Source of the DNA: Blastocladiella emersonii ATCC 22665
Taxonomy: Eukaryota > Fungi > Blastocladiomycota
Length of the DNA stretch: 64,000 bases
Direction: 5' to 3'
Assembly: GCA_025594325.1 (NCBI GenBank)
Contig: JANHCV010000009.1
Coordinates: forward strand, 124,001 to 188,000
Part shown: one piece after another, positions 27,884 through 48,825 of the stretch
Numbering within the stretch: position 1 is the first letter of the stretch
Layout: each line of letters opens with the position of its first letter
Translations under genes and position numbers: made by a program
The notes under the pieces: generated by a model
Told to the model about the DNA's origin: nothing
What the model saw: the letters and a program-made list of their open reading frames with translations, nothing else
Database searches by the model: none

Positions 27884-29761
27884 ATGGAGCATCCAGCACT
27901 GCTGCTGGCACACAATGCAAGCCTGCCGTCCACCGCCGCCGCGGCCATGGCCACCGTGACCAGGCTTGCCGCGAATGACACGGCCGCGGCCTTCGCCGTG
28001 TCGTACCCGAGCCTCGGCTCGCCCGTCCCGCCGGACGCCGCGATCCTACGTGCCAGCGCCATCGCGTCGTGCGTGTCAGGCGCACTGGGCCTGCTCGTCG
28101 TGGCTGTCATGTTCCCGCGCGCGTTCCCGCAGCGCGGCGGGCAGCAGTACCTGCCGTCCGAGTCGGCGATCCGGTTCATGTCCGTGCGGTGCCGGCTGCT
28201 GCTCGCGTGCGGCGTGATCCTCGTCGTGTGCGGGATCAACGGCGCCGTCTACTTCTTTCGCCTCGCGGGCGCGGGGGACGCGGACCTCAGCCCGCGGCCG
28301 CCGTGGCTCCTCGAGTACCGCGTCGCGTTCACGGCGACGTTCCCGTCGTTCGGCCCGCTGTTCACGTGGGCGGTCGCGCAGCGGTGCGCGGTGGTCGTGA
28401 TCCAGGACCGCGACGCGCGCCAGACGTTCCTGCGCGTCGTGTTCGCCCTGTGCGCCGCCATCTACGTCGCCGTCACGGGCGGCGCCGCCGCGCGCACCGT
28501 CGACCTCGCGACCCCGCTGCCCGGCGCGCCCGCGGGCGTCTGGGTCAACGCCGCCATGGTCGCCAGCTGGGGTATCATCCCCGTCTTCGCGCTCCCCGCT
28601 ATCACCATCGCCGGGTCGCTGTGGGCGCTGTGGGCGGGCACCAGCCGCCGGATCGCCAAGATCCAGGGCCGCCGCGAGCGCAGGAGCGCCGTCGCGAGGA
28701 TGCCCAGCGCGGCGGCCGAGGCCGCGGCCGAGTGTAAAGCTGACCTCGCAAGCCGTGTGCGCGAGCTCGTTGGCGACGTGGTCGCGGCGTTCCGCACCAG
28801 CGACACGCGGCAGACGCTCGGCGCGTCCGCGTCGCTCGTGTCCGGCAGCGAGGGCGGGGCCGGGTCCGCGACGAGTAGCCCGAGCAGCACGGGTACCGCA
28901 ACGAGCGGCGGTGGTGCCTCGACCTCGTCGGCCGCGACGGGCACTGCGAGCACCTCGCACGACACGACGACCACGGCACTCACCCGCCCGTCCGCGCCCG
29001 CTGCTGCCGCCGCGGGAGCTATCGGCGCCAACGCGTTCCCCGACCCGTCGCACCGCCGCCGCAGCTCGCACGCGCACGCGCTGCCGCACCACGGCGGGTA
29101 CGGCGGGAGCAGCAGCCACGGCGGCGGCGGCCACGCGTCGAAGCGGCGCAAGCGCAAGAAGCACAAGTCGCGCAGCTCCTCGTCTTCATCCGTCAAGTAC
29201 CCCCTCTCCCTGACCTTCGCGATGCTGACCGCGGTCCTGGTCGTCGAATGGACCGCGTTCGTGCTGCTGGCCGGCGTCCCGACCCCGTGGGGCGTCGTCC
29301 GCAACACGCCGCTGCTCGAGCTGCTGTCGGGGCTCGGGTGCCTGACCGAGGCGTCGTTCGAGCGGCTCATGCAGTACAACAACCGCCGCCGCCGGCGGCG
29401 CGAGTCGAGTGCCGGTGGGGCTGCCGCGGAGAGGCATTTTGGGATGACGACGGTTGGTGTGGAAGCGGAGGTTGCGGGCGCGGGTGAGAAGGAGGTGCGC
29501 GACGACGCGATGCCCGCGGCGATTGTCAAGACAGAGCAGCAGGTGCTGGTCATGGTAGAGGCGGCGACCATCGAGGCCACGGCCATCGAGACAACTACGA
29601 CGACGGCGGCGGAAGCGGCTTCAGCGGCATCGTCCGCGCTCGCGGCCATGAACACGTCGGCCATGATGAGCACGTCGGCCGTGTACCTCACGGCCATGCG
29701 ATCGCCGGGCGAGCTCGTCGCGGACGCGAACGCGGAGGTGACGAGTTCCGTGGTGACCTGA
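27884..29761 (+). CDS. Predicted seven-transmembrane (GPCR-like) protein with a long third cytoplasmic loop
   Basis: Five hydrophobic helices, then a long Ser/Thr/His- and Lys/Arg-rich loop, then two more hydrophobic helices and an acidic Ala/Thr tail. N-terminal NAS/NDT sequons. Confidence 0.6.
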   Translation: MEHPALLLAHNASLPSTAAAAMATVTRLAANDTAAAFAVSYPSLGSPVPPDAAILRASAIASCVSGALGLLVVAVMFPRAFPQRGGQQYLPSESAIRFMSVRCRLLLACGVILVVCGINGAVYFFRLAGAGDADLSPRPPWLLEYRVAFTATFPSFGPLFTWAVAQRCAVVVIQDRDARQTFLRVVFALCAAIYVAVTGGAAARTVDLATPLPGAPAGVWVNAAMVASWGIIPVFALPAITIAGSLWALWAGTSRRIAKIQGRRERRSAVARMPSAAAEAAAECKADLASRVRELVGDVVAAFRTSDTRQTLGASASLVSGSEGGAGSATSSPSSTGTATSGGGASTSSAATGTASTSHDTTTTALTRPSAPAAAAAGAIGANAFPDPSHRRRSSHAHALPHHGGYGGSSSHGGGGHASKRRKRKKHKSRSSSSSSVKYPLSLTFAMLTAVLVVEWTAFVLLAGVPTPWGVVRNTPLLELLSGLGCLTEASFERLMQYNNRRRRRRESSAGGAAAERHFGMTTVGVEAEVAGAGEKEVRDDAMPAAIVKTEQQVLVMVEAATIEATAIETTTTTAAEAASAASSALAAMNTSAMMSTSAVYLTAMRSPGELVADANAEVTSSVVT

Positions 29762-30430
29762 TCGGACGCGAGGCGTGATGCGTGAACCAAAAACGACCTT
29801 CATTCATTCACGATGACGGTCGGCGTGGAAGCGGAGAACGCGGCCGCGGGCAACAAGGAGAACGCGGCCGTGATCGCTTGCTTCGGTGGTCAAGGCGGAG
29901 GAGAGGGTGCTGGTCGTGGTCGAGGTCACGGCCATCGAGACGACCGCGAAGCTGGCTGCGGTCTCTGACCGTCCGAGCTCGCGACCATGACACGTCGGTC
30001 GTGGACCTGACCGCCACATGGTCGCCGGGCGAGCTCGTCGCGGACACAAGTGCTGAGACGACGAGTTCCGCGGTGACGTGAAGCGGCTTGAGGCAAGATG
30101 TGGGAAGCAAAACAACTTTTATTCATTCACGATGACGGTCGGCGGGAACTCGGTCGTGGGCGACAAGGAACGCGAGGCGATGGCTGTGGCGGCAGCGAGC
30201 AATGCGGAGGGAAAGGTGCTGGTCGCCGTCAAGGCCGGGGCCATCGGGACGACCGCGGAGCTGCGGCCACCGAACCGTCAGCGCACGCAGCCATGAGCAT
30301 GTCTGCCGTGTACCTGACGGCAACACGGTCGCTGGTCAAGCTCGTCACGGACCCGAACGCGGAGACGACAGGACCTGATCCGACGCGGGAGCAGACGTGA
30401 TGTGGAAACCAAAACAACGTTCATTCGTTC
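29444..30430 (+). repeat. Three degenerate tandem copies (~300-370 nt) of the 7TM gene's last coding segment plus the start of its 3'UTR
   Basis: Units start at 29444, 29813 and 30132 (ATGACG..GG). All contain GGTGCTGGTC, GCCATCG.GAC and GCTCGTC.CGGAC, and end in AAAAC.AC..TTCATTC.TTCA. Confidence 0.85.
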
Positions 30431-30530
30431 AACGGCGTCAATGGGGAGATGAGGGGAGAGATATCGAGAGGAGAGGGAGACAGCCGACGCCAGCGCCAGC
30501 CGCCGCCGATCGCGCACTTGGGCGAGTCGC

Positions 30531-32765
30531 TTATTTGCCGGGGCGGACGACGATGATGGTGTTGGGGCTGGTAGCGCCGCCGCCGTTCCAGCCGGGCGGG
30601 AGCGCGGGGCCGTAGAAGGTGGCGGGCACGGCGGCCTGGCGCGTGCTGTCGGCCGCGTCCTCGGACCCGACCACGTAGTAGTTGTAGCCCGACTGCGCCT
30701 GGGCGCCCGTCGAGTAGTCGGCGTAGTCGGCCGCGTCCTCGGCGTAGTCGGCGCCGTCCTCGACCGAGTAGTCGGCGTAGTCGGCACCGTCCTCGGCGTA
30801 GTCGGCAGCGTCCTCGGTCGAGTAGTCGGCGTGGTAGTCGGCGCCGTCCTCGGCGTAGTCGGCCGCGTCCTCGGTCGAGTAGTCGGCGTAGTCGCCGGCG
30901 TCCTCGGCCTCCTCGAGCGAGTCCTCGGCCGCGTAGTCGGCGTAGTCGGCACCGTCCTCGGCGTAGTCGGCCGCATCCTCGGTCGAGTAGTCGGCGTGGT
31001 AGTCGGCGGCATCCTCGGCCGAGTAGTCGGCGTAGTCCGCACCATCCTCGGCGTAGTCGGCCGCGTCCTCAGTCGAGTAGTCGGCGTAGTCGCCCGCGTC
31101 CTCGGCCTCCTCGAGCGAGTCCTCGGCAGCGTAGTCGGCGTAGTCGGCACCGTCCTCGGCGTAGTCAGCCGCGTCCTCAGCCGAGTAGTCAGCGTAGTCG
31201 GCACCGTCCTCGGCGTAGTCGGCAGCGTCCTCGGTCGAGTAGTCGGCCCAGTCGGCCGCGTCCTCGGTGGCCGAGTAGTCGGCGTAGTCGGCGCCGTCCT
31301 CGGCGTGGTAGTCCGCCGCGTCCTTGGACGCCGAGTAGTCGGCGTGGTAGTCGGCGGGGTCCTGGGCGACTGCGTCCTCGGACACGGCAAACGCGGCCGA
31401 CGACGTGGCGAACTGGGGCTTGGCGGCCGTCTGGAACAGCGTGCGCTTGGTGTTGGCGCACGTCATGATGCGGCGCACCTCGAACTCGAGGTTGTCGCGG
31501 CACTCGTCGTTGTCGGCAAAGTTGTGGGCGCCCTGGAGCGTGATGCGCTGCGGGCCCGAGGGGAGCGCGCCGGCGCGCGCCGTGACGCTGATGGGCAGCC
31601 ACTTGCCGACGGGCAGCGACGCGTCGCGGAACACGCGGCCGCCGACGCGGCGCGACCCGTAGTAGAACGACACGGCCGCGTGCTTGACGGCGCACTTCTT
31701 GGCGGGGGTCGTGCCCGAGGCCGCCGCCGCCTCCTTGCCCTCGCGGAACCGCACCTGCGCGTAGAAGCGCACGAGCTTGGCCTTCTTGGGGATCTTGACC
31801 GCCGACGCCGTCTGGAACCCGTACTTGTGCAGCGCGCCCGACTCGAGGTTGCGCGCGGCCCCGTCGCGCTGGATCACCAGGCCGCCGTTGCGCGTCGCGC
31901 GCGCCGTGGCGGGGAACTTGGGCTTGGTGTACGGCAGCAGGCGCGTGCGCGGCGACTTGTTGAACGACGGCTTGCCGTTCACGTACACGACTACGCATGG
32001 GCGAGCGGGAGGGGACGGGTCAGTGCCTGGTTCGAGCGGGAGTAGGCCGTAGAAGAGACACGTACGCTTGTTGCAGAAGGCGCGGAGCTTGGACGGGATC
32101 CCACGGCGGCGGTTAGCGCCACGGAGGCCACGGCCACGGACGCGGCGGCCCGCGACACGGCCGGCACGGCGGCAGAAGCAGTCGAGCGCCTTGCCCTCGC
32201 CGGTGCGCACGCGGAACTTGCGGCCGCGCGGGCGGCGCTTGAGCTGCTGCACGAGGCGGCGGCGGATGCGGCGGCGGGCGCCGGCGTCGAGCTCCTCGTC
32301 GTCGGCCGACTTGGCCACCTCGCGGATGCGGCGGCGCGCGCGGCGGCGCAGGGCGCGGATGCGCGCGATGCGGCGGCGGCGGCGCGCAGCGAGCTCGTCC
32401 TCGTCCACGTCCTCGTCCTCGAGCCCGTCGCCGCGCGCAATCGAGCGCACGCGGCGGCGGATCTGGCGGCGCAGGCGGCGCGGCACGAACTCGTCGATGT
32501 CGAGGTCGTCAGCGCCGCGGCGACCGAGACCACGGCCGCGCGCGCCGTTGCCCGAGGCCGACGGGACCGAGGCGGCGCCGTCGATCGGGTTGCCGAGGCC
32601 GAAGCCCGAGTTGCCGCCGGGCGTGCGCTTGGCGGGCGGCATGTCGAAGAAGCGGTTCGAGATGGGCACGGCCGTGTCGGTCGACGCCTGCGGCTTGATG
32701 GGCTGCGGCTCGGCCACGGCCAGCGAGGCCACCGCCGCGACGGTCAGGAGGGTGGCGAACTTCAT
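30531..32765 (-). CDS. Secreted multi-block protein (~719 aa): signal peptide, Arg-rich block, Cys-containing central domain, Asp/Tyr (ADY) repeat tail; intron 31991-32065
   Basis: MKFATLLTVAAVASLAVA signal peptide, RRRR-rich region, tandem EDAADYAEDGADYADYS repeats, and terminal QAQSGYNYYVVG...TIIVVRPGK. GTACGT...CTGAC...TAG intron of 75 nt. Confidence 0.85.
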   Translation of the reverse strand: MKFATLLTVAAVASLAVAEPQPIKPQASTDTAVPISNRFFDMPPAKRTPGGNSGFGLGNPIDGAASVPSASGNGARGRGLGRRGADDLDIDEFVPRRLRRQIRRRVRSIARGDGLEDEDVDEDELAARRRRRIARIRALRRRARRRIREVAKSADDEELDAGARRRIRRRLVQQLKRRPRGRKFRVRTGEGKALDCFCRRAGRVAGRRVRGRGLRGANRRRGIPSKLRAFCNKRTCLFYGLLPLEPGTDPSPPARPCVVVYVNGKPSFNKSPRTRLLPYTKPKFPATARATRNGGLVIQRDGAARNLESGALHKYGFQTASAVKIPKKAKLVRFYAQVRFREGKEAAAASGTTPAKKCAVKHAAVSFYYGSRRVGGRVFRDASLPVGKWLPISVTARAGALPSGPQRITLQGAHNFADNDECRDNLEFEVRRIMTCANTKRTLFQTAAKPQFATSSAAFAVSEDAVAQDPADYHADYSASKDAADYHAEDGADYADYSATEDAADWADYSTEDAADYAEDGADYADYSAEDAADYAEDGADYADYAAEDSLEEAEDAGDYADYSTEDAADYAEDGADYADYSAEDAADYHADYSTEDAADYAEDGADYADYAAEDSLEEAEDAGDYADYSTEDAADYAEDGADYHADYSTEDAADYAEDGADYADYSVEDGADYAEDAADYADYSTGAQAQSGYNYYVVGSEDAADSTRQAAVPATFYGPALPPGWNGGGATSPNTIIVVRPGK

Positions 32766-33263
32766 GGTACCGGTGGGTGGTGGTGGTGGTGGTGGTGGGT
32801 GGGGATGAGGGTGGGTCGGCGGGGTTGCGTGCACGATCCGGCGGCAGCACGAGGTCGATCCAGCGAGCCAGCGGGCAGAGAGAGGGCGGGCGGCGGGGGG
32901 AGCGGCGGCCTGATATGGCGCGCGGACGCGGGCGGACGGGCACGTTCTTCGAGGGCAACGAGGGCGAGGGCGAGGGCGACGCGTCCGCTCCGCCTGGGAA
33001 GCCCCGCCGCGCGTGCCGCGCATTCCCACGCGGCGCGGACGCGTGCGCGGCGGGAGACGCGCCGAGCGAATGACGGGGCGCATGACGGGGGCACCGAGTC
33101 CCGCACCCGCCGCGAGACGCGTCGCGGAAGCCACGCGTGGGAACCGACGTCCGACGCGCCCCACGTGCCCCGGAACGTGATATCCGAACGCGTCTCCCGT
33201 CTCGCGCCTTGCGTCTTGACCTCGCACCTCCCATCAAAGCAAGCTTCCATGTAACTTGAAACC

Positions 33264-33428
33264 ATGCAACTCGATGCAATGAACCCGCAACGGCCACGAC
33301 TGGTCCCCGACGTCATGGACCGAATCCTGGCGAGGACCGTCTCGCTTCACTACGACAGCGAGAAGATTCGACTGCGTGAGCCTGGGGTCAACCTTGTTCG
33401 CACCCTAGCCAGCTACACTCAAATCGCT
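33264..33428 (+). pseudogene. 5' fragment (copy A') of the F-box-like/LRR array gene
   Basis: MQLDAMNPQRPRLVPDVMDRILARTVSLH...LVRTLASYT is homologous to the N-termini of copies A-D; homology stops near 33428. Confidence 0.7.
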
Positions 33429-33652
33429 CCCCGACCAACTTTACGCGTTAGCCCTGTCCGCGCGGGGCTTGAGGGAGTGTGGCTGAGAGCGGCACTTTGC
33501 CCGGCCAAGGAGGCGTGGATTCCTGGCCGGTGTGCGGCGCGATGCGGGACATCGAAGTTGAAACGCGACGCGACGGGCAGCACGAGCTCGCCAACGCGCG
33601 GCCAGCTTTCCGGGCGTCAAACGCCAACAAGCCCAAACACCTCCTAATTGCA

Positions 33653-35604
33653 ATGGAACTTGACGCAACACATTCTTGCAGACTTATTCTCGTACCCGAC
33701 GTGATCGACCGCATTCTTGTGAAGACGGTATCGCTGCACGCTGCCGGGCGGCCACGCGCGTGTCTGCGTTCGTCCGAGGCCTGCAGCGAACTTGTGCAAG
33801 CTCTTTCCAACTACACTCGCGTAGCTTGCCGTGCCGTCATTTCCAATGTGCTTCCGCGTGCGTTTGCAGTCATCCGGCACCTGATCGACGTGATGGTCGC
33901 GAGGAGCCATCTTAGCATGCCTGCCTTGCGTGCTTGGGGCGCGAGCGGACTTGTACTCGCAGCCTCGCACCCCATGGTGAAGCTCGATGTTCTGCACTCG
34001 CTGTTCAGGATGGAGGCGTACCGCGACGCTGGTATCGGGATCAGCGGCATTAAGTCGCCGCTCCCGCAGGTCTTGGTCATGTTCGACTTGGGCCACCTCG
34101 TTGGGACCTTGAAGGCTGACTTGTCGGTGCATGCTTCTCGTGTGCAGTCCCGTCGACTGGTGTCCCGTCTTGGCTGACTCACGCTCGCGTCTAGCTCGAG
34201 CCCCGCGTGCCACCGGCGGGAGACGTCGCCATCGACGAGTTAGCGAACGATATTGCAGCTGGCCGCATCACTACCATTAACTTCTCCAGAAAGCGGATCA
34301 CTTCGGCTGGCACCGCACGACTTTCGAACGCACTTGCGAGCGAGCAGCAGCAGGTGTCGAGGGTCTCCCTCAAAACTTACGATTTGACCTTGACGACGCT
34401 AGCCGAGATCGCGTTCCCGCCAACCATCGAGCATCTTGATCTCTCATCCAACCGCATCGGCTCTTCTCGGCATCTCGACGAATCGATGGCCGGCAACGTG
34501 GCTCCCCCGATCGCACATTTACCACCCTCGCTCGTGTCGCTCAACCTCAGCAACTGCAACCAGAGCTTTGGCCTCTTCCAGCTTCTCCAGGTCCCGCTGC
34601 CGGAATCTCTCGCACGGCTCGACTTGAGCAACAACGTCATCCGCGGCCCGGACCTCGCGACACTCGGCCGCGCGCTTCCACCTCGGCTCATCGAGCTGCA
34701 ACTGGCCAATGTCAAGCTTTTTCGACGGTCGCTTGGCATGACGCTTGATAGCGTCCTGTCTCAGCAGCTCGGCGCGCTGGCCTCGCACTTTCCACCGACG
34801 CTCGCGACCCTTGACCTTCGCGGTTCCCGGATCGGGAACAAGGGTATTGCTGCGCTTGCCCAGCACCTGCCCGCGTCGCTGACCACGCTGATCCTCTCGA
34901 ACAACGGCATCAGCGACTACTCGCAGCTTGTGCGGCATATGCCGCCGCAGCTCGAGCGTCTTGAGATGACCGAAGAGCGGAGCAGCTTCCAGGACTTTGA
35001 TCTCGATGCTGACCGAACCAAGTTCCTCGAGACCGCGCTCAAAAACCAGCGCGACGAGGTCTCCGCCAAACTCGTTGACGCGTTTCCGCCGACGCTCAAG
35101 CATCTCGCTTTCAACCGGCTCCGCACGCGGTATCACCGGAGCTTCTTCTACTTCATCCGGTACCTCCCGCCCGCGCTCAAGACGCTTGATCTCAGAGACT
35201 GGTTCGTGAGTCGGCGTGTGTGGTGGGAGCTCGCCATCGCAGCCCTGCCGCCGACGCTTGAGCGGATTACGATCGACCGACGCGTCTACCGTGAGGTACT
35301 GAACGCCATGGCTCCACAGCTCCCGAGCGGTCTCGCACTCGTTCAACCCGGCATCCGCGAGTGGTACGGCCAGCGTGAGCCGGACACTGCAGTCGTCGAG
35401 CCTAGTTCAGCCCTTTTCGAGAATGATCCTTACTGCACATACGACGAATCGCTTCAGCAAGGCGTCGAGCTGTGCGACAAGTACTCGGGACAGGCCTTGA
35501 AGGTGCACCTTTGCTACATCGACCACTTTCCTGAGAACGGCGAAGAAGGGCAGTCAGGCCGCCACTCACCACGCACGCGCGCGCGGCTGGTTGACCGTCT
35601 CTAA
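33653..35604 (+). CDS. F-box-like/RNI-type LRR protein, copy A (intact, ~627 aa; intron 34127-34194)
   Basis: N-terminal LVPDVIDRIL motif; repeated LPPxLxxLxLSxN units (HLDLSSN, SLNLSNC, RLDLSNN, TLDLRGS, TLILSNN). The phase-0 GT-AG intron joins two ORFs in frame. Confidence 0.85.
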
Positions 35605-35946
35605 CTGACCATGCAATATAAAACTTTGCTGGGAGAAGGCATACCGCAGCACCCCCACGAGGGGTAGTACCCTCAACGCTTGTGCGGATCACGCGCCAAC
35701 CGCGTGATTCTTAACGCTATGGCCCCATAGTTCCCTGTGTTGATGTGCTCTCGAAAACATGGCTCAGTTGACACCTCGCCTGGACCGCTGTCGGCAACCG
35801 CGAAGCGCGACGCGTTGGTCGGAACAGGTGACGGCTCAGGTGATGGCGGCGGCGCCACACGGCGCCTGTTCGCTAGGCAACTCTGCGCCCTCGACGCCTC
35901 GCTCTCCAGCATGTCATGTAAGCCGATGAATTTTGTACCCAACACC

Positions 35947-37645
35947 ATGGAACTTGCTGCAACGTTATTGCGCCGGCCCAGGCTCGTTCCTGATGTCATT
36001 GAGCGCATCCTGGTGTTCACTATTTTGTTGCACAATACCGACCTACCTTTCAGCCGCTCAGTCGACGGGGTCGCCTTAGTGCGCCAACTGTCCAACTACA
36101 CTCGCGTCTCGTGCCGCGCCAATATTCCAATGGTGCTTCCCCTGGTGTTTGACACGATCCTCCTTTCTTCTTGCCTGCGCAGCGCGGGAGTGAACCTCAA
36201 CATGCCTGCCTTGCGTGTTTGGGCTGCGTCTGATCGGCGGATTACTGGCGATTCCTTCTGGCTATCGCCCATCTTTGTCCATCACTACGATCGAATTGAG
36301 GCCTTTCGCGACGCTGGCATCCCAATCGACCACGTTTGGATGCCGCGCCCGCAGATCTTGGTCATGTTTAATCTTGGTCATCTTGTTGGAGCAAGCCAAG
36401 TCAATTTGGCGGTGCGGTCTTTATGTATCAAACATCGTCATGATGTGCGCGCTTACGCAAACTCCTTGTCCGTGAACAGGTCGATCCAAACGTTCCGCCA
36501 GCGGGTGATGTTGCTATCGCGGAGCTGGCCCAGGATATTGCTTCTGGCTCCGTTTCTTGCGTCGATATTTCGGTCAAACAAATCACTGCGCCTGGTGCGC
36601 GACGGCTTTCGCTCGCGCTCGGTAGTGCGCGCCAGCAGGTTTCGGACCTTAACCTGTCGACCTGCGACCTGACTTTGGCGTCGCTCTCCGAGATCAAATT
36701 TCCTGTGACCGTAAAACACCTCGACCTTTCTTTCAACAGGATCGGTACTTCCCGACATTTCAATCGCCAAACCGGCAAGGCTACGCTGCCGACTGTCCGC
36801 TTACCGTCGTCGCTAGTGTCGCTCAATGTCAGTCGCTGCAACCAGCGATTTGGCCCCACGCAACTCTTCCTGGACGTTTTGCCGGCTTCGCTCGAGCGGC
36901 TTGATCTGAGCGGCAACATATTCAACGACGACGACATTGAGACTATTGGTCGCGCACTTCCGCCTAGCCTCGTCGAGCTGCGACTCGCAGATCTCAGGTT
37001 GTTTACCTACTACACGGACCAGGGCCCGACTCCATCCACGTTCACTAAGCTAAGCCTCTTCGCCTCGCGCCTTGCGCCAACTCTGACACTCCTCAACCTG
37101 CGAGGAGCCCAGTTCGGAGACCGAGGCCTGGCCGCCATTGCTCCCCATTTGCCCGCGTCCCTCACGACACTTGTTCTTTCCGGCAACATCATTGGCGACT
37201 ATACCCCGCTCTCTGAAAATATGCCGCCGTGACTTGAGTCGCTTGAGCTCGCCTCGAGCTGGTGCGGCTTTCACGGAAACAATCGGCTTCGCACGCGATA
37301 CCACCGCACCTTCGTGTACTTAATCGAGCACCTTCCACCCCTGCTCGAGTCGCTTGATCTCTCAGCTGGTATGTCAGCCGCTGGGCATGGTGGGCCTTGG
37401 CCACGGCCACGCTTCCAGCGACGCTCAAGACGATCACGGTCGACTTGTGCGTTAACAACCGATTCATGGATGTCGCTGCCGAATGGCTCCCCATCGGCAT
37501 CACGCTAGTCCAGTCTCGCGGTCGCATTCGCCACGGTCGGCGCGAGCCAGGTGATGCTGCGCCCAGCGAGCCAGATGCAGCGCTGCTCGCAGGGGACCCG
37601 TACGAGGAGAATTTGGCCGAGGGCGAACCTGGGCTCGAGTACTGA
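35947..37645 (+). pseudogene. F-box-like/LRR copy B (disrupted; intron 36412-36479)
   Basis: Premature TGA at 37230-37232, an internal deletion between ELA and NRLRTRY relative to paralogs, a frameshift near 37370, and TGA at 37643-37645 where copy C has TGG. Confidence 0.8.
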
Positions 37646-38834
37646 CAGCTCTACGCAGATTGCCAGTACATTGATTTCGACGATTACAGACCCGGGTCTC
37701 TCTCTGAGAGCGAATACAGCGACGAAGATGACGAAGAGGGCAAGTGAACATGTTGGCGGCGGACAACCGGACGTGTCCACCATCGAAGTGTTCCAAATTA
37801 TATATAAAGTTTTTAACTTGAGCCTCGAGTCTGTCTGCTTGCTTCTCTGCGCGAGAAGAACTGCGGCAACATGCCGAAATAATCGACGCGTGCTCGCGTG
37901 ACCGCTGACACTCGTTCCGAAGGACGTGTCTCGCGTCTGGTGCGAGACACGTTAGTCCGTGCGGAACGTATGTGGTCCGGCCTTGATCCATGTGGGTCGA
38001 TTTATTGTCAACGGTTCATTTTGTGCGAGTCCTTGTACGAACGCGCTGCGGAACATGATTCTGCTCGCACACCTTCGCGATCAGTGAGACATAGCGTCAA
38101 GCACGAACATCATTTATTATGCACATCTAAGCAGAAAAATCCGACAGCACTACCGGGCGACAACATAGACCACGTTTCTCGGGCGGCCATCGTAGCCCCA
38201 GACGCTCTTGGGCGGCTCTGGGTTCTTGAGCTTGTTGATGTCAATGGGGATCGTGTTGATCGCCTGAACGATCATCGTGGGCGAGAATCACATGTGCTGC
38301 GCGTACATGTCACCGCCATCTTCGACCAAGTTGTGCCAGTCGAAGCGACCCGCACGCCCGCCTTGCTCGTCGCCTTGATCGTCGTAGCCAGCGCGGAGCG
38401 CCCATCGCGAGGGACGCTGGGCCGGTCGACGTGAAAGTAGTGCTTGCCGACGCAAGGAGCGCTATCACAACGACGACGATCGAAGAATGATGCAAGAGCT
38501 TCTTAATGTTCATGATCATGGTGACAGGGGACGCGATTTGCGGAGAGTTCGAGGAAAGTTGTTTGGAGCGTGATTGAGCGGGATGACTCGTCTGGTTCGG
38601 CCTCGAATTGACAGTGAACCTCCGAGATGATGTGATGCGAGACGTGTGAGACAGCGCGTTTCGTGGCGGAAAGCTGTCAGCGTGTATCGGCGAGCGAGAC
38701 AGGAGTGTCTCGCAACGCGCCGCGGCACGTGGTGGCGCCGCCACTCGCTGCTTTTGTAGAAATGAACCGACCCCGGAACTGACCCGGGCTCCGCGGACGC
38801 TCAATGTAACTGATGAACTTTGCACTCTTGCACC

Positions 38835-40818
38835 ATGAAACTTGATGCAACTAGACCTCGTTGGCCCCTGCTCGTGCCTGACGTGATTGACCGCATTCTT
38901 GTGAACACGATCGCGCTGCACGATCTCGAGCTGCCGCCGACGTTCAAGGACGGTGTCGCCTTAGTGCGCCTTCTCGCAAACTACACCCGCGTTTCCTACC
39001 GCGCCAACATTCCCCGAGTCTTGCCTTACGCACTTGCTCTGCTCCGGCGTCGCTTCACTCTGGATACAGCTGGGATAGGCTTGAACATGCCGATTCTGCG
39101 CGCTTGGGCTGCAGTCAATCATCGAAGCATTGGCTTGAGCCTTGAAGTAATGCGTGACACAATGTATCACTTGCACTGAATCGAGGCGTTTCGAGACGCC
39201 GGCCTTCCGATCTACGGTGTTTGGGCGCCACAGCCACGGCTCTTGGTGATGTTCGACCTCGGTCATCTCGTGGGTATTCGCGTGGTAAACTTGACGGTTC
39301 GATTTGCGCGTGACCGGGTTCAAATGTTCCCACAAACTGATTTCCACTCGTATGTAGGTTGATCCAAGCGTTCCCCCGTCCGGCGATGTTGCCGTTGACG
39401 AACTTGCTGACGGGATTGCTTCTGGTCGCGTAACCGCGGTCGACATATCTGTCAAACGCATCACCGCGGCGGTTGCACGCCGGCTCTCGGACGCGCTTGC
39501 GGACGAGCGCCAGCGGGTCACACACTTGCGGCTCTCGACCTGCGATTTGACTCTCGCATTGCTGGCCGAGATCACGTTCCCGACGACTCTAACGCATCTC
39601 GATCTCTCATTCAATCGAATTGGTTGTTCTTGGGACCTCCATCGGTGTTCGGATCGACTAGCCATCCCAACAGTCTGTCTACCACCTTCACTCGTGTCTC
39701 TCAACCTCAATAACTGCAACCAGCACTTCGGCCTTACGCAACTTCTTCGCAACCCACTGCCTGATTCAATCGAACAACTGGACATGGGTGGCAACGTCGT
39801 AAACAGCCGCGACCTTGAGGAGCTTTGCCGCGCACTCCCGCCAAGCCTCGTTGAGCTACGACTTGACAACCTCGTACTCTTCTCCCGCCATCCGGGAGAG
39901 ACCCTGCCCTCGTGTATGGCTCGTAATCTGGGCGTGCTTGCCTCGAAGTTTGCACAGACTCTGACACTGCTTGATCTTCGCGACTCGTGGATCAGCGACC
40001 GAGGTCTGGCTGCAATCGCTCCGTACCTGCCCGCGTCGCTTACTACGCTCATCCTCTCCAATAACAGCATTAGCGACTACACTCCACTCGTTTCGCACAT
40101 GCCACCGCGTCTCGAGCGACTTGAGCTTGCAGAAACCGCGTGCAGCTTCTGGGACTGCGACGGCTTTGCGGACGAGACCAAGTTTTTGTTGACGGCGCTG
40201 TACAACCAGCGCGATGAAGCGTCGGCCGCGCTTGTCGACGCGCTCCCTGTAACTCTCAAGCACCTCGCATTAAACCGTTTGCGCACGCGGTACCACCAGA
40301 GCTTCCTGTACTTTGTTCATCACCTTCCGCCCGCGCTCGAAACGCTCGACCTCACAAACTGGTTCGTCAGTCGCCGCGCATGGTGGACGCTCTCGACCGC
40401 GCCGCTTCCATCAAAGCTCGCGCGGGTTGTACTTGACCGGCGCGTCAACCCGCGGTTCTCGGACGCCCTGGCTCCGAACCTCCCTGTCGGCGTCGCCCTA
40501 GTCCAGCCAGGTGTTTGCGAACGGCACGGTCAACGCGAGCCGGGCACCGAGGCTCCTGGGTTCGAGCCATCGCTGTTCGCGCGCGACCCGTACGAGGAAA
40601 ATGTCGAAGAAGGCGAGCCCGGGCAAGAGTATTGGCAGTTGTACGAGGGTGAACCCTTTCTCGTGCACAACACCTACATCGGCGGGTACCTCTCGGACGA
40701 AGAGGAAGACGAGGAGGAAGACGAGGAGGAAGACGAGGAGGAGAGTGATGATGATGGCACTGACATTGATGGCTCAGACGATGACGGCGCGGACGACGAG
40801 ATTGAGGAGGGCGAATGA
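38835..40818 (+). pseudogene. F-box-like/LRR copy C: one premature stop, otherwise intact, acidic tail; intron 39297-39357
   Basis: In-frame TGA at 39177-39179 where copy B has CGA (D-R-IEAFRDAG). The frame continues through the intron to a 430+ aa LRR exon ending in poly-E/D. Confidence 0.8.
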
Positions 40819-41064
40819 ATTAATTGCTCGCGTGGCATAAAAATTTGATCACGTTGGAATGATATGAAAGCAAACCATTAAGACCGTGAGGATTCAGTGG
40901 CGCGTGCAACACGTGTGGTGGCTGCGAGACCAGGGGGGCTGGCGAGACATTGCGGAACAAGCCCCAGCCCCCCACTCGGGCCCTCGCCCTCCAGCTCCCC
41001 CTTCCTCTCTCCCAGATGTCAACTCTCCCCATGAACGCTCATATCGACTACGTAACTTGATGCA

Positions 41065-42928
41065 ATGAACTCTTGCAAACCTATGCTCGTACCCGACGTC
41101 ATCAACAACATTCTTGTGGCGGCAGTGCTACTTCACGATGTGCCGCTGGCCAACACGGACACGGCGCGCGCCGAGCTTGTGCAGACCCTGGCCAACTACG
41201 CCCGCGTCACGCGCCGGGAGTACATCCCGAGCGTGATGATTCATGTGCAGCGTGTTATCCGGAAACGTATCCCCCTGTATGACGCTTTTGAGCACTCTTG
41301 GTTGCCTGCCCTGCGAGTTTTGGCCGAGCTTGGCTCAGTCTTGGATGGCTCGATGCGCCAGGTGCGGCTTGCAATCATGCATCAGCTCAATAAGATTGAA
41401 GCGGCTCGCGACGCGGGTCTCCCACTTGTTGATGTTATGGCGCCGAGCCCGCACTTGCTTGTCGTCTTTGACATGGCCCAGCTGGCTGGCGTGTCCAAAG
41501 CTACTCTCCAGGCACGCACTCCCTGAAACACCTGATGGGCGGTTGTAATCGCCTCGCCTGCTCAGTTTCTTACGTTCGCCTGGCGATGACTAGGTGGATC
41601 CGAAAGCCGTTCCTTCGGGAGACGTTGCTATCGCTGGGTTGGCCGACGCGATCGCGGCCGGCCGTGTTGAGACCGTTGACATCTCGATGAAGCGGGTCAC
41701 CGCGACTGGCATTCGGCGGCTCTCGGCAGCATTTGCGAGTAACTACCAGCAAGTTTCGAGTATCATCCTCACGACCTGCAACCTGACTCCCGACTCACTC
41801 AATGAGCTTGCTCTCCCGCCCACTATCTTGCACCTGGATCTCTCATTCAACCGGCTTGGTGGCTCGCAGCAGTTTGAATTGACCAACAAGGTCCGCTGCG
41901 CTCGGCCATTCCGCTTACCGCCCTCGCTCAAGTCGCTCAACATCAGCAACTGTCACGATAGCAGCGGCCTCCTGGATCTGTTCATCGACGCGCTTCCAAT
42001 CTCTCTCGAGCGGCTCGATTTGAGCGGCAACTCGTTCACACACGAGGACCTTGAAACCCTTGGTCGCGCGCTCCCGCCAAAGCTCGCAGAGCTACGTCTC
42101 GCCGCCATGGATCTATCTCAGCGGGTGCCAGGCGGAACACTGGACGATGAAGTATTGGATAGCCTTGGGCTCATGGATTCGCACTTTCCGCTCACGCTCA
42201 TGACGCTTGACTTGCGCGGTTCCTGGATCGGCGATCGCGGATTCGCTTCAGTTGCACAGCACTTGCCCGCGTCGCTCACTAAGCTCATCCTCTCAAGCAA
42301 CAGCATCAGCGACTACTCTCCGCTCGTGCACCGCATGCCACCGAGCTTGACGCACCTTGAGCTCGCCGAGGACCACGACAGCTTTGAGGACGAATATGGA
42401 GACACGCGCTACTTGTGGACGGCGCTGTACAATCAACGCGACGACGCGTCCAAGGTGCTCATCGACGCGCTCCCGCCGACGCTCAAGCACCTCGCCTTCA
42501 ACCGGCTGCGCACGCGGTACCACCGCACCTTCGTGTACCTTATCAAGCACCTCCCGCCCGCGCTCCAGTCGCTTGACCTCACGGGCTGGTTTGTCAGCCG
42601 CCGCGCGTGGTGGACGCTCGTGACGGCCGCGCTTCCATCGACGCTCAAGGCGATCAAGGTGGACTCGCGCGTCAACCACGAATTCATGGATGTCCTGACT
42701 CCGCAGCTGCCCCAGGGCGTCGCGCTGATCCAGCCATGGGTTGGCGAGCGCGATGGCCGCCGCGAGCAGGGCGTTGCTGCTGCCGAGGCTGACACGACCC
42801 TGTTTGCAGACGATCCGTACGAGAATGACGAAGAGCTTGACGGCGAGCCTGAACTCGAGTACCATGAGTGGTACGCGAACCAGGTCGACGACTTGAACAG
42901 CACGTATCGTGCTGACCTCGAGGTGTAA
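41065..42928 (+). CDS. F-box-like/LRR copy D (intact, ~593 aa) with a GC-AG intron 41512-41593
   Basis: MNSCKPMLVPDVINNIL exon joined in frame via CAG|GCACGC...TAG|GTG to the LRR exon. The intron position is the same as in copies A-C. Confidence 0.8.
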
Positions 42929-43061
42929 GCTAAGAGAGGTAGGCGAACGTTTCTTGATTTGACTCTGCAAATACATGTTCCACATTGATATGTAAGCTTG
43001 TGCGCAAGTGATACTGATCTCAACATGTTGACTTGGTCGTGATGGGCTATGTTCTTGAATT

Positions 43062-43765
43062 GACGACCGTGGCCTCGCGTCGATCGCTTGCCACTTGCTC
43101 ACGTCGCTCACCACGCTGGTCCTCTCAAGCAACGGCATCAGCGACTACTCTCCGCTCGTGCGCCACATGCCGCCGAACTTGACGCACCTCGAGCTCGCCG
43201 AGAACCGCAATAGTTTCATGGACAACGACGTTGAGGTTGAAGAAACCCGCTTGCTATGGTCTGCGGTGCACAATCAGCGAGACCAAGCCTCGAAGAAGCT
43301 CATCAACGCGCTCCCGCGGACGCTCAAGCACCTCGCCTTCAATCGGCTTCGCATGCGGTACCACCGTAGCTTCGTTTACTTCGTCCAGCACCTCCCATCC
43401 GCTCTCGAGTCGCTCGACCTCACCGGCTGGTTTGTCAGCCGCCGCCCGTGGTGGACGCTCGCGATGACCGCGCTTCCTGTGACGCTCAGAGCAATTACAG
43501 TCGACACGCGCATGAACCGAGGTTTCATGAACGCTTTGGCGCTGAGCCCCAGGGCGTCGCGCTGATTCAGCCAGGAGTAGGCGAGCGTCGTGGCCGCCGC
43601 GAGCACGGCGCCGCCGCCGCAGACCCTGATGCGACCCTGTTCGCCGACGACCCGTACGACAAAGACAACGTCTTTGATGGCGAGCCGGGAATCGAGTACC
43701 ATCAACGGTACTCGCGCCGGGTCCAGTCCTTGCACTACTCGTATCGTGCCGATCTCGAGGGTTGA
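43062..43765 (+). pseudogene. 3' fragment (copy E) of the LRR gene, with a frameshift
   Basis: DDRGLASIACHLLTSLTTLVLSSNGISDYSPLVRHMPP...NRLRMRYHRSF; frameshift near 43545; the tail GVALIQPG...YRADLEG is nearly the same as copy D. No N-terminal half. Confidence 0.8.
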
Positions 43766-44029
43766 GGCATAGACATGCAGGCGAGACGTGTTAATAGAAA
43801 CAGTCGGTTGTTCGACCGCTGGCCGCTGCTGCATGAGCGAGCCGCAGCGCGAACGCTTTGCGGTGAGCGACGTGCTGCGCCACACCAGCCTGGGGCTAAA
43901 ATTATCGGGCTTTGCCTGGGCGATCAGCGGCCGTTCCCCCACGCCGCCTACAAAGCCCTCGAGCCCCCGCGCCCTTGGCCTGCTCAACACCCCACACATC
44001 CTCGCAACGTAACATCATCATCAACAACC

Positions 44030-45309
44030 ATGCCGAACAATGCACTCTGCGTCGGAATGACCTACGGAAGCGAGCTCGCCGGCTCGGACGTGGACGCGTA
44101 CAACATGGCGGGTCTCGCGGGGCAGCTCGGCATCGAGAACGTCGAGACGCTGACGGACACGCACACGTCGGTCGTGACGCCCGACGACGTGCTCAACTCG
44201 CTGCGGTCCATGGTCGACAACGCGCAGCCCGGCGACACCCTGCTCTTCTCCTTCTCGGGCATGGGCGGGCAGTCGCCCGACGCCACGGGCGCCGAGGCCG
44301 ACGGGCAGAACGAGTTCCTGGCGGTCTCCGACGGCGTGATCACCGACGACGAGATCCGCGCGATCCTCGCCGACCTGCCGGCGGACGTCAACTGCACCAT
44401 GGTCATGGACGCGGGGCACACGGGCACGATCGGCGACCTCGACCTCTCGGGTGCCGAGATTGCCGGCAACGTCGTGTGTCTCTCGTCCACGAACGACGCG
44501 GGCACGGCGTCGCTCGCCGACGCGATGGGCAGCCCGTTCACCAACGCCGTCGTCAACGTCATGACGGACAGCGCCAACTCGGGCGTGTCGTGGGCTGACG
44601 CCGCGGCGCTCATCGACGCGGAGCTTGGCAACGAGGAGCCCACAGTGGTCGCGTCGGCTAACCGCACCGAGCGTACGTTTCTCCACTCTCATCACTTCCA
44701 CGCGGATCCGGCAACTGACGCTCATTTCGAACGATAGTTCTCTTCGAGCCCGTGTTCGGCGGCGCTGACCTCGGCAACGGCGGAGAGCACGACGGCCATG
44801 GCCGCGCACTCGCTCGCGACGTTGCGTCCGAGCACGACGACCCGAACGTGTCGGACCCGGCGGACGAGGCCATGGAGCGCGGCGCGACGGCCGCTGACGA
44901 CCTCCAGGGCGATGTCGACATTTCGCGCGGCGCCGAGGCGAGCGAGGACCCGTACAACGACTACTCCGCCAACGACGACTACTCGCGCGGTTCCGTCACG
45001 GCCGCCGACGACCTGCAGGGCGACAACGACTTTGAGGCCCGCGAGATCGACCCGACGCGGACGATCGTGGGCGTGGACACGAACGGCGACGGTCGGATCG
45101 ACGTGGTGGCGTGGACCGACCACAACACGGGCATCTCGCGGCTCAACGTGCTCGAGGGCGACCGGCTGCAGATGGCCGACAACAACCACGACGGGCTCGT
45201 CGACAGCAACTACACGGCGGGCACCGACCACGTCGTGATCCCGGCTGGAATGAATATCGCGGCGTATGTCGACGCGCAGCAGGCGGCGGGGATGGAGATT
45301 CATTTTTGA
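44030..45309 (+). CDS. Metacaspase-like (peptidase C14) protein lacking the catalytic His and Cys, with an acidic C-terminal extension (~404 aa; intron 44673-44737)
   Basis: NALCVGMTY, AQPGDTLLFSFSGMGGQ (normally SGHGGQ), EADGQNE, ITDDEI, CTMVMDAGHTGTIGDL (normally DSCHSGT.LDL). The tail has VDTNGDGRID and ADNNHDGLVD. Confidence 0.85.
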
Positions 45310-45867
45310 GTGAGTGTGGAGGGCAGATGTACATAGACAACGCTTCGTGGATCATAAGTCGGCCGTGGTATGAGATGTCCAGTGGATTCAGGAATCGGGG
45401 AAGCAAGCGAGTCGCGCCGCGAGTTGACGGCGGTCGGTGACCATGGCCATGGCCATGGCCGTGCAGCGGCCGCCGCGCTTTGAGCTTTGGGGCGTTCGCA
45501 CTCGTCCGCACCTTGCACGCCTCGAGCAAGCAATCCAGGTCGAAGCACCCGTTGAGGGTATTTCTTGAACGCGGAGACCAAGGACTCCGGCGAAAGACGC
45601 TCGAGTACAGAGAGATCGCGCAACACAGGGCGGTCATGGCCGTGACCGCGGCCATGTTCGCGAACGAATTCCGCGATTCCTCTTGCCCTCACTGGACTAA
45701 CTCACTGAAGCGCTCGAGCAAAAGAGTCTAGCGTTGGATTTCATATTTTTGTGTTTTGTATTCAAGGACGGCAGATGAGGGGAGGAGGGGAGGAAAAATG
45801 GCGAGCGAGCGAGCGGACAGGTAGGGCGGGGGAGGGAGGGAGAAGCGACGGCGACAGATCACACAGC

Positions 45868-46944
45868 TTACTTGCCGGCGGTCATGACGATGATGGTGCG
45901 GGCGCCGGGCGGGGCGGGGGCGGTGGGCACGGCCGAGGCGCCGTAGCCGTACTGGGCCTGCTTGGCGCCGTCGGCGCCGACCACGTAGTAGTTGTAGCCG
46001 GACTGGGCCTGGGGCGCGACCGAGTAGTCGGCGTGGTAGTCGGCGCCGTCCTCGGCGTAGTCGGCGGCATCCTCGGTCGAGTAGTCGGCGTGGTAGTCGG
46101 CGCCGTCCTCGGCGTAGTCGGCCGCGTCCTCGGTCGAGTAGTCGGCGTGGTAATCGGCGCCGTCCTCGGCGTAGTCGGCCGCGTCCTCGGTCGAGTAGTC
46201 GGCGTGGTAGTCCGCGGCATCCTCGGCCGAGTAGTCGGCGTAGTCACCCGCGTCCTCGGCCTCCTCGAGCGAGTCCTCGGCAGCGTAGTCGGCGTAGTCG
46301 GCACCGTCCTCGGCGTAGTCGGCCGCATCCTCGGTCGAGTAGTCCGCGTAGTCGGCACCGTCCTCGGCGTAGTCGGCAGCGTCCTCGGCCGAGTAGTCGG
46401 CGTAGTCGGCGCCGTCCTCGGCGTAGTCGGCGGCCTCGTCCAGCGAGTAGTCGGCGTAGTCAGCACCGTCCTCGGCGTAGTCGGCCGCGTCCTCGGCCGA
46501 GTAGTCGGCGTAGTCGGCACCGTCCTCGGCGTAGTCGGCGGCATCCTCGGCCGAGTAATCGGCGTAATCCGCGCCGTCCTCGGCGTGGTAATCGGCCGCG
46601 TCCTCGGTCGCGTAGTCGGCGTGGTAGTCGGCCTCCTCGAGCGCGTCCTCGACCGAGTAGTCGGCGCCGTCCTCGGCGTAGTCGGCCCAGTCGGCCGCGT
46701 CCTGCGTCGAGTAGTCGGCCCAGTCGGCGCCGTCCTCGGCGTGGTAGTCGGCCGCCTCCTCCTGCTTGGCGAAGTCGCGCGGCATCGCGGCCGCGGCCGC
46801 AGAGTAGTCGGCGTGGTAGTCGGCGCCCTCGACCGACTCGACCAGGTTCTGCTCCGACGACGCCTGCGGCTTGATGATGGGCGACGGCTCGGCCAGCGCC
46901 AGCGTGGCCACGGCGGCGAGCGTGAGGAGGGTGGCGACCTTCAT
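45868..46944 (-). CDS. Secreted Asp/Tyr (ADY) repeat protein (358 aa), paralog of 30531-32765
   Basis: MKVATLLTLAAVATLALAEPSPIIKPQAS, roughly 40 DY motifs in 17-18-aa units, and C-terminal QAQSGYNYYVVG...TIIVMTAGK. Confidence 0.85.
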   Translation of the reverse strand: MKVATLLTLAAVATLALAEPSPIIKPQASSEQNLVESVEGADYHADYSAAAAAMPRDFAKQEEAADYHAEDGADWADYSTQDAADWADYAEDGADYSVEDALEEADYHADYATEDAADYHAEDGADYADYSAEDAADYAEDGADYADYSAEDAADYAEDGADYADYSLDEAADYAEDGADYADYSAEDAADYAEDGADYADYSTEDAADYAEDGADYADYAAEDSLEEAEDAGDYADYSAEDAADYHADYSTEDAADYAEDGADYHADYSTEDAADYAEDGADYHADYSTEDAADYAEDGADYHADYSVAPQAQSGYNYYVVGADGAKQAQYGYGASAVPTAPAPPGARTIIVMTAGK

Positions 46945-47520
46945 GGTGGTGTGGTGGTGGGATGGGGATGGGTGGGGGAAGGAGACGGTCGTCGCGCCAG
47001 CGCGTGTCGATGCTAGACGAGAGCGGGCGAGTGGGGCGTGTGAGTGGTGCGCGGACGGGCAGCGCACGCGCGCACGAACGAACCTCTTGAAGGTGGGGAG
47101 GGGTGGGGTGGACTAGAAGCCGATCCGAAAGCTCGCAGACGCAGTCAGTCGGAGAGGAGAGAGCGCGGGTCGGGCGGCGGGCGCGGCGGTACTTGACGTC
47201 CCCGCATCGCTCGCTCGGCTTCGCGGCCCGCCCTCCGCCCCGAAGTGCGCGGACGCTGAGAGCGCGGTGCTGACGAGTGCGGCGAGTGTCCCCCACCTTT
47301 CGCGACGCGCGCAATTCCCACGCGACGCGTCCCGCCGCCGCGTCTCGCACCGGGCGCACCGTGGGACGCGTTGCTCACGCGAGCGGCACGCGACCAGCCG
47401 CACGGGATCCGCGCGTGTGCGACATGCGCACGTGCCGGTGACGCGACTCTTCTCGACGACATACCCCTCCAGAGACTTGTATTCGCACCCCGGCACCACC
47501 TGCAACGTAACCGCAACACC

Positions 47521-48772
47521 ATGGACGTGATCGTCGGCGAGTTCAACAAGTTCGCGGCGCGGCACCGCGAGTACGCGGGCGAGGCGGGCGCGGACCTCGA
47601 CGACCTGATCGAGACGCTTCGTTCAGCGCGCGCCGACATGTCCGCCGAGCAGGACGGGGCCGCGCGCAAAAAGTCGCTCGTGCTGCTCGCCGCGCAGGTC
47701 AAGTCGAAAGCCGCGCGGCTGACGGACTCGGCCAAGGACGTGGCGGGGTCGCTCGGCAAGTGCGGCAAGGCCATCGACAAGAAGTTTTCCGGCAACGACC
47801 TCGACTGGCACCCGCGCGCCTTCGAAGGCAAGGCGCCCATCATCCACCAGCTCGTCGGCGAGCACTTTATCCGCGAGGGCCACGTCGCGCTCGCCCACAC
47901 GTTCCAGCGCGAGGCCGGCCTCGAGTCGCTCGAGACGTCCGACGTGCACTTCCAGGAGCTCAACCGCCTCGTCTCGTCGCTGCGCGCCCGCGACCTCGGG
48001 CCGGCGCTGGCCTGGGCCGTCGACAAGCGGTTCGACCTCAACCGTATCGACTCGGACCTCGAGTTTGTGCTGCACAAGCTGCGCTTCCTCCAGCTCGTCG
48101 GCGACGCCGGTGCTGGCGCTGGGTCGGTCGCCAAGAACGCGCGCGTGCTCGACGCCGTCGCGTACGCCCGCGAGAACCTCGCCCAGTTCCCTGAGCAGGC
48201 CCAGGGTGCGTCACCCGCGCGTACCGGCTGCCCGCCCTCGCCCACTCACCTCTCTTCGCGCGTACCCAGACATCCAAGCGCTGCTATGCTCGCTCGTCCT
48301 CTCCCCGACCGCGCGCGCGAGCCCGACGCTGCCCGCCGCGTACCGTGCGCTCGAGTCGCCGGACGTGCTGTGGTCCGACGCGGAGCGCCAATTCGCGCGC
48401 GACTTCTGCGCCCTACTCGGCTTGAGCCCGGACTCGCCGCTGTTCACGGCGGCCATGGTCGGGACCACGGCGCTGCCGACGATCGCCAAGATGGCGTCGA
48501 TCATGAAGGACACCAAGAACGAGTGGACGTCCGTGCACGAGCTGCCGGTCGAGGTGCCGCTGCTGCCGCGGCACCAGTTCCACTCCATCTTCACGTGCCC
48601 CGTGTCGCGCGAGCAGGGGACCGAGGACAACCCGCCCAAGATGTTGCCGTGCGGGCACACCATCTGTAACGAGTCGCTGCGCAAGCTGTCGCGCAATTTC
48701 ACGGCCCGGTTCAAGTGCCCGTACTGCCCGTGCGATGCGATGGCGGCGCAGTGTCTCCGCGTCTACCTCTGA
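47521..48772 (+). CDS. RMD5: GID/CTLH complex RING subunit Rmd5/Gid2 (RMND5), 1 intron
   Basis: LisH/CTLH region (EHFIREG, LEFVLHKLRFL), ELPVEVPL, FHSIFTCPVSRE, NPPKMLPCGHTIC, FKCPYCP. Confidence 0.9.
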
Positions 48773-48825
48773 ACCCGAGAGAGAAAGTCTTGTATATATC
48801 CTCCTTCAATCACATGCGCGCAGCC

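Follow-up and report, generated by a model that had tools for sequence, protein, structure and literature searches.

A leucine-rich repeat array and a dead metacaspase share a duplicated block in Blastocladiella emersonii

In Trypanosoma brucei, the metacaspase MCA4 is described in the abstract of its report as catalytically inactive, and it is reported to interact with an active metacaspase (PMC3220528). Tandem mixtures of intact leucine-rich repeat (LRR) genes, pseudogenes, and gene fragments make up the birth-and-death immune clusters of plants and animals (NLR or RLP arrays), and RI/CC-type LRRs preceded by a short conserved N-terminal module are found in the F-box/LRR (FBXL-type) receptors of SCF ubiquitin ligases, including the Ralstonia GALA/RipG effectors (PMC2244805). 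Here, an island of the fungus Blastocladiella emersonii ATCC 22665 was analysed, in which an array of LRR genes stands beside a metacaspase-like gene that lacks the catalytic dyad, both lying between two genes for secreted proteins with ADY repeats (ADY-long and ADY-short). The window is the whole stretch of 64,000 nucleotides that was analysed, positions 124001-188000 of the 1.74-Mb contig 21 (C21), and the island occupies window positions 30531-46944, within which all parts listed by an initial annotation of the bare sequence were found. That annotation had also guessed at a zoosporic fungus, correctly, the metacaspase-like protein being 100% identical to H9P43_007043 of B. emersonii. Genome-wide searches covered 32.65 Mb of GC-rich sequence in 21 contigs, the number of contigs in the published B. 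emersonii assembly (PMC9730499). Positions without a prefix are window positions; L004 denotes the second-locus stretch of C21, on which L004:8703-9758 corresponds to C21:280703-281758.

The LRR array and the dead metacaspase occur together twice on this contig. A second block (C21:271971-279661, minus strand) carries three LRR genes of the same subfamily (L004:1008-7661), followed by a paralogue of the metacaspase, so that the order of the parts is kept; the block is inverted relative to that of the window and lies ~104 kb away. Over 838 nt, the metacaspase stretches of the two blocks share 92% identity. Window block and second block have flanks with nothing in common: apart from the LRR and metacaspase genes, tblastx of the window against the second locus yielded noise only, and a whole-genome search placed no ADY gene at the second locus. 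Since the second locus has both the LRR array and the metacaspase, without ADY genes and between other flanks, we conclude that array and dead metacaspase were duplicated together as one block to which the ADY genes did not belong, a relationship that is new here. A single copying of the pair would account for the inverted second block. A third close metacaspase copy, at C21:380298, has no LRR neighbour. The features of both loci are collected in Table 1.

Table 1. Features of the island, its right-hand neighbours, and the second locus (window positions unless prefixed C21)
Feature	Position	Strand	Description
ADY-long (H9P43_007040, 719 aa)	30531-32765	-	exon 1, 32066-32765; exon 2, 30531-31990
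ADY-long intron	31991-32065	-	75 nt, GTACGT...TAG; annotated protein skips 25 residues there
A'	33264-33446	+	5' LRR-gene fragment with ~61 codons from the start of the head; copy A lies 389 nt downstream
Copy A	33653-35604	+	intact
Copy A exon 1	33653-34126	+	helical head and ankyrin-like repeats
Copy A intron	34127-34194	+	phase 0
Copy A exon 2	34195-35604	+	~12 LRR_6/FNIP-type repeats and acidic tail
Copy B	35947-~37650	+	pseudogene; exon 1 (35947-36411) open
Copy B exon 2	from 36480	+	114-nt deletion, frameshift, TGA stops (1 TGA + 2 TGA)
Copy C	38835-40818	+	one TGA (39177-39179) in exon 1; exon 2 (39358-40818) open
Copy D	41065-42928	+	intact
Copy D exons	41065-41511, 41594-42928	+	intron 41512-41593 with GC donor
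E	43092-43765	+	3' LRR-gene fragment, frameshifted
Dead metacaspase (H9P43_007043, 404 aa)	44030-45309	+	100% identical to annotated protein; splice inference agrees exactly
Metacaspase exon 1	44030-44672	+	Peptidase_C14 domain, catalytic His->Met, Cys->Gly
Metacaspase intron	44673-44737	+	phase 1
Metacaspase exon 2	44738-45309	+	acidic linker and two Dx[DN]xDG-type loops
ADY-short (358 aa)	45868-46944	-	signal peptide, ADY repeats, shared C-terminal end; without basic block and beta-sandwich domain
CTLH/RING gene	47371-48772		first housekeeping-type gene outside the island
Sec1 gene	48806-50527		outside the island, after the CTLH/RING gene
MULE transposase ORF	C21:269764-270822	-	open, E 5e-12; ~530 nt beyond the metacaspase paralogue
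SPX-domain gene fragment	C21:280703-281758		just upstream of the second LRR array

On this anatomy, the region is probably a patch of three unrelated gene families, each private to the species or the phylum, that was built by repeated local and segmental duplication, rather than a dedicated multi-gene system. The initial annotation had put forward two readings, an undescribed defence or development module and a duplication-prone region, and it is the second that the data bear out: besides the inverted block copy at ~104 kb, each end of the array has its partial tandem duplicate (A'/A, period 389 nt; D/E, period 841 nt), a neighbouring seven-transmembrane (7TM)-like gene has its 3' end tripled, and four of the six LRR copies are defective. 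Fragment E is a tandem partial duplicate of the final ~680 nt of copy D, at 78-80% identity.

All six LRR copies that had been read on the strand opposite to the ADY genes are present, but only A and D are intact, the others being broken (B and C) or reduced to fragments (A' and E). The genes have two exons, separated by a phase-0 intron of 61-82 nt. Premature stops in the otherwise open copies, C of the window and S3 of the second array, are all TGA, and each coincides with an Arg or Lys position of the paralogues; recoding of TGA was considered and rejected, because Arg or Lys at these positions fits CGA-to-TGA (CpG) mutation. The LRR genes of C21 form a subfamily with 49-58% internal identity and at most 40% identity to the remainder of the LRR family, for which 129 or more genomic matches were counted on scoring 95 of the 570 candidates. 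In the protein collections searched, all of them public, full hidden Markov model (HMM) search with an exon-1 profile and word search by exon 2 both failed to bring up the genes of either C21 array, whose annotation may be lacking or wrongly modelled. For exon 2 of copy D, the sole word-search match was one distant B. emersonii paralogue, a result uninformative on other species. The neighbours H9P43_007040 and H9P43_007043 do occur in public protein sets, with only two locus tags between them.

Exon 2 of copies A, C, and D matched LRR_6 (E 5e-12 to 5e-9), together with FNIP, LRR_4, and LRR_1, in Pfam. Twelve LRR units of the RI/CC type could be aligned, with the LxxLxLxxN pattern repeated, and the closest solved LRR structures were the Ralstonia GALA protein 9j7j (E 1.3e-6) and the Legionella LRR protein 3goz. 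No signal peptide, kinase, NB-ARC, NACHT, NTPase, or other signalling domain was found in the LRR proteins, the Pfam matches being to LRR families only, all in exon 2.

The F-box-like label that the initial annotation had given to these genes was tested in several ways and gained support in none of them. The head encoded by exon 1 had no Pfam match, F-box or F-box-like families included, even at E <=10 (8 head sequences), and a whole-genome scan with PF12937 gave 72 matches, ~40 of them above the family cut-off, with none inside C21:157-168 kb or C21:272-280 kb. Profile-profile comparison of the head with 20 genuine F-boxes of the same genome (hhalign) gave a probability of 0.14%, E 0.3, and a score of 5.4, while reversed or shuffled controls scored up to 9.5. 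An AlphaFold2 (AF2) model of the head (pLDDT 85.5) consists of a bundle of long helices, then helix pairs with short strands. With this model, Foldseek returned no match at E <=0.001. The best VIA-align matches reached Z 8.1 at most and were to BAG domains and helical bundles of a generic kind; F-box proteins were missing from the first 50, although small helical motifs are difficult to rank in such a search. A profile search of the PDB with the head gave chance-level matches only (E >0.7), and the protein atlas gave no usable match. Searching the head profile against 1.84 billion representative proteins yielded five matches, one of which was a spurious repeat protein; in the other four, from B. 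emersonii, B. britannica, Allomyces javanicus, and one metagenome, the head precedes either LRR or ankyrin repeats. As far as such profile matches can tell, the head is a module specific to blastoclad fungi, because its few named relatives come from these sources, and it is followed by ankyrin-like repeats.

These results bear directly on the reading by which the LRR proteins would serve an SCF ubiquitin ligase as divergent F-box/LRR substrate receptors, with a head that is an F-box beyond detection by sequence or fold. The start of the head, LVPDVIDRIL, was aligned by hhalign in register with the LPxEIL start of true F-boxes, like true F-boxes, the same head is found joined now to LRRs, now to ankyrin repeats, and the RI/CC-type repeats have a GALA F-box effector (9j7j; PMC2244805) as their nearest solved relative. 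Against this stand the empty Pfam search, the genome-wide F-box matches that miss both arrays, an hhalign score below the control maximum, and a modelled head that resembles generic bundles and BAG domains; we therefore hold the reading to be improbable. The likeness to FBXL-type and GALA receptors resides in the repeats and in the short conserved module before them, whereas the B. emersonii head is longer, is a predicted helical bundle with ankyrin-like repeats, and has no detected F-box. The LRR genes are better read as two-exon genes for soluble proteins, in which the blastoclad head, ankyrin-like repeats, and about a dozen RI/CC LRRs follow one another, and which would most likely act as protein-binding adaptors.

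Pairwise comparison of exon 2 among six usable sequences gave dS values of 0.95-2.0 and dN/dS ratios of 0.23-0.44, and on these figures the LRR copies diverged long ago and are constrained on average. The LRR tree forms an unresolved star, in which counterpart copies of the two C21 arrays are not assignable. With pairwise dS at about 1 or more, and two copies intact, two broken, and two fragmentary, the array appears both old and decaying. Diversifying selection on solvent-exposed LRR positions, a check that the initial annotation had asked for, was looked for at the predicted exposed xxLxLxx positions and no excess was seen: dN was 0.42 at these 60 positions and 0.44 at the other 242 positions of the repeat region, amino-acid identity was 51% in both sets, and dN/dS over the whole exon was ~0.3. 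The resemblance to NLR or RLP clusters is therefore one of tandem composition (intact genes, pseudogenes, and fragments side by side); unlike those clusters, the B. emersonii array encodes no NB-ARC or NACHT domain, signal peptide, or kinase, its exposed positions do not evolve faster, and its copies are old.

The metacaspase-like protein matched Peptidase_C14 (PF00656) at E 1.7e-14 and solved metacaspases at 4e-12 to 2e-8. In alignments to the structures 3bij, 4f6p, and 7qp0, SFSGMGGQ stands opposite SGHGG, and DAGHTG opposite DSCHSG, so that the caspase/hemoglobinase-fold domain is present and the His-Cys dyad is gone, just as the initial annotation had supposed. Judged by its sequence, the gene encodes a Peptidase_C14 homologue and is not an active peptidase. 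The family has 43 matches in the genome; among the 23 copies inspected, the dyad was kept in 12 and lost in 11. The three closest copies, that at C21:380298 included, all lie on C21 and all carry Met and Gly at the dyad, and since they share these residues the loss predates the duplication. Close relatives were found by word search in B. emersonii only.

Between the window and the second locus, the protease-like domain differs by 12 nonsynonymous and 22 synonymous changes (dN 0.025, dS 0.153, ratio 0.17), and the dead protease domain is clearly under purifying selection. The homologue would thus have lost its His and Cys before the block was copied and been maintained by selection afterwards, and the gene probably encodes a working pseudoenzyme. 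The protein has no lysine in its 404 residues, with 13 Arg (3 in the domain), 52 Asp, and 22 Glu. Across the 23 copies, Lys and Arg together make up 2.6% of dyad-less and 4.7% of active family members (Mann-Whitney p 0.009, relatedness uncorrected). Because it has no lysine and few arginines, the dead metacaspase would offer few cut sites to Arg/Lys-specific active enzymes. Its most likely role would be to accompany or regulate, without cutting, the many active metacaspases of the genome.

The closest described counterpart of this protein is MCA4 (PMC3220528), with which it shares the Peptidase_C14 fold and the lack of activity; selection has kept the B. emersonii gene, which may plausibly regulate or partner active paralogues. 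The abstract on MCA4 speaks only of catalytic inactivity, whereas in the B. emersonii protein both dyad residues are replaced (His->Met, Cys->Gly). The B. emersonii protein is further set apart by its freedom from lysine, by a tail with two calcium-loop-like motifs, and by membership of a large private family of which about half of the checked copies are dyad-less.

The joint duplication raises the question of whether array and metacaspase form a functional pair. Under one such reading, they are a two-part intracellular surveillance or cell-death unit that was duplicated whole because it functions as a unit, the LRR proteins sensing a ligand and the pseudo-protease serving as scaffold, decoy, or regulator of active metacaspases. 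Order and orientation are identical in both blocks, the dead protease domain has a dN/dS of 0.17, and MCA4, a working dead metacaspase reported to interact with an active one (PMC3220528), offers a precedent. The two loci stem from a single duplication, however, and amount to one observation only; no LRR neighbour stands beside the third close metacaspase copy or beside most metacaspase genes; and other LRR arrays, such as that at C19:508-518 kb, have no metacaspase nearby. The copy adjacent to the metacaspase is defective in both blocks (fragment E in the window, S3 with its TGA in the second block), the proteins carry no NTPase or other signalling domain, and exposed LRR positions show no excess of change. 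We consider this reading unlikely.

Proximity elsewhere in the genome also speaks against such a unit. By a rough estimate, ~67 LRR clusters cover ~5% of the genome, so that chance alone should place ~1.8 metacaspase loci at <=10 kb from an LRR; three independent cases were observed at <=10 kb, and in the two cases other than the present one unrelated ORFs (open reading frames) intervene. LRR and metacaspase genes thus neighbour each other about as often as chance predicts. A functional link between the LRR array and the pseudo-metacaspase is improbable, and equally so is the more specific proposal of a co-inherited two-component unit in a fungal surveillance or cell-death pathway, in which the adaptors present targets to, or are guarded by, a lysine-free pseudo-protease that tunes active metacaspases, the unit having been duplicated whole with its protease-like domain kept nearly identical in both copies. 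The defence or development module of the initial annotation is not supported: no F-box was found, exposed sites show no excess, the ADY genes are absent from the second locus, and LRR and metacaspase genes are mostly unlinked elsewhere.

Several points weigh against reading the region as a mere patch of gene families. The LRR array and the dead metacaspase are adjacent in both blocks despite their old divergence, as a functional pair would also be. The comparison of exposed LRR positions was crude, since it relied on six sequences at saturated dS and assigned the exposed positions by motif and not by structure. Moreover, the protease-like exon is far closer between the blocks (92% nt identity, dS 0.15; 44030-44776 against C21:271971-272936) than are the metacaspase tail (dS 0.63), the intron (74% identity), the flanks, or any LRR pair, a contrast that may reflect gene conversion, unusually strong constraint, or alignment noise in the acidic linker.

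The ADY genes that bracket the window block are, as had been noted, same-strand paralogues, with a shared signal peptide and AEPxPI(I)KPQAS motif (23/30 identical), ADY repeats, and a common QAQSGYNYYVVG...GK end. ADY-long lies where it had been placed, but its 75-nt intron had escaped the first reading. From its N-terminus, it is made up of a signal peptide, an Arg-rich/acidic block, a predicted beta-sandwich (CBM-like) domain, the ADY repeat tail, and the QAQSGYNYYVVG end. The repeats of the two proteins are 67% identical over 335 columns (E 2e-102), and these are the only two copies in the whole genome. In B. britannica, a relative of ADY-long with 48% identity shares its signal peptide, basic block, and predicted beta-sandwich domain; because it ends without the ADY tail, the tail is taken to be a recent addition, shared with ADY-short.

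For the central domain of ADY-long, AF2 modelling with no more than 4 sequences as input gave an all-beta structure (pLDDT 76.5), and its Foldseek matches to CBM4-2, CBM22, CBM16, CBM61, and MAM, at E ~1e-4, are weak (TM 0.4-0.47); the protein atlas lead for this domain scored <0.9. The domain is thus predicted to be a jelly-roll beta-sandwich, with the CBM4, CBM22, CBM16, CBM61, and MAM folds as its best matches. Unlike members of the CBM families, it has no family match at the sequence level and a TM of only ~0.4, and sugar binding is putative. ADY-long is probably a wall or matrix protein, a role proposed because of the modelled CBM-like domain. As a pair, the ADY genes would encode local, secreted, very acidic Tyr/Asp-repeat proteins, the long one with a predicted CBM-like domain, that merely flank this copy of the block.

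Their position invites the alternative that the ADY genes act as direct repeats which mobilise or rearrange the enclosed 12.6-kb block, itself an inserted or excisable cassette. The two genes are the sole copies in the genome and have the same orientation, with ~700 nt in common (78-83% identity), the block is present elsewhere with different flanks, and a MULE transposase ORF lies close to the second-locus metacaspase paralogue. The DNA homology of the ADY genes nevertheless stays within coding sequence and fails to delimit the homology between the blocks, and no transposase, integrase, or terminal repeat lies inside the block of the window. The MULE ORF has a handful of related copies in the genome, none of them in the window, and the stretch 29000-48500 of the window has no transposase, integrase, or inverted repeat. 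We regard mobilisation by the ADY genes as very improbable.

In its surroundings and composition, the island agrees with the initial annotation. No housekeeping gene lies inside it, the nearest outside being the CTLH/RING gene and the Sec1 gene, and the LRR part is less GC-rich than the flanks, with a GC content of 0.586 against 0.67-0.75 in the flanks and 0.66 in the whole window. GC at third codon positions (GC3) is 0.66-0.75 in the LRR genes and 0.90-0.95 in the metacaspase, the ADY genes, and the flanking genes. We also asked whether the low-GC part might be of foreign origin and decided against it, since the second C21 LRR array has the same GC dip; the introns also counter it, being short and having GT(A/G)CG-type donors as in neighbouring genes. 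Between copies B and C, a spacer of ~1 kb (37830-38834) occurs once in the genome and was likewise rejected as a repeat or transposon. A tRNA scan found no tRNA gene at the region. To the left of the island, the 3' end of the 7TM-like gene stands in three tandem copies (29671-30419), with a 122-nt core at 64-77% identity and a spacing of 320 and 307 nt.

Neither ankyrin-LRR adaptors nor dead metacaspases are mentioned in the text of the B. emersonii genome paper (PMC9730499). If the modest reading of the region as a duplicated patch of private gene families is true, it would illustrate in detail how such families arise and decay in an early-diverging fungus, and the tempting but unsupported label of a "fungal immune island" is removed. 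The dead metacaspase is the part most worth following, being under selection, free of lysine, and placed beside an LRR array in two old copies, and B. emersonii could serve for studying the function of pseudo-metacaspases.

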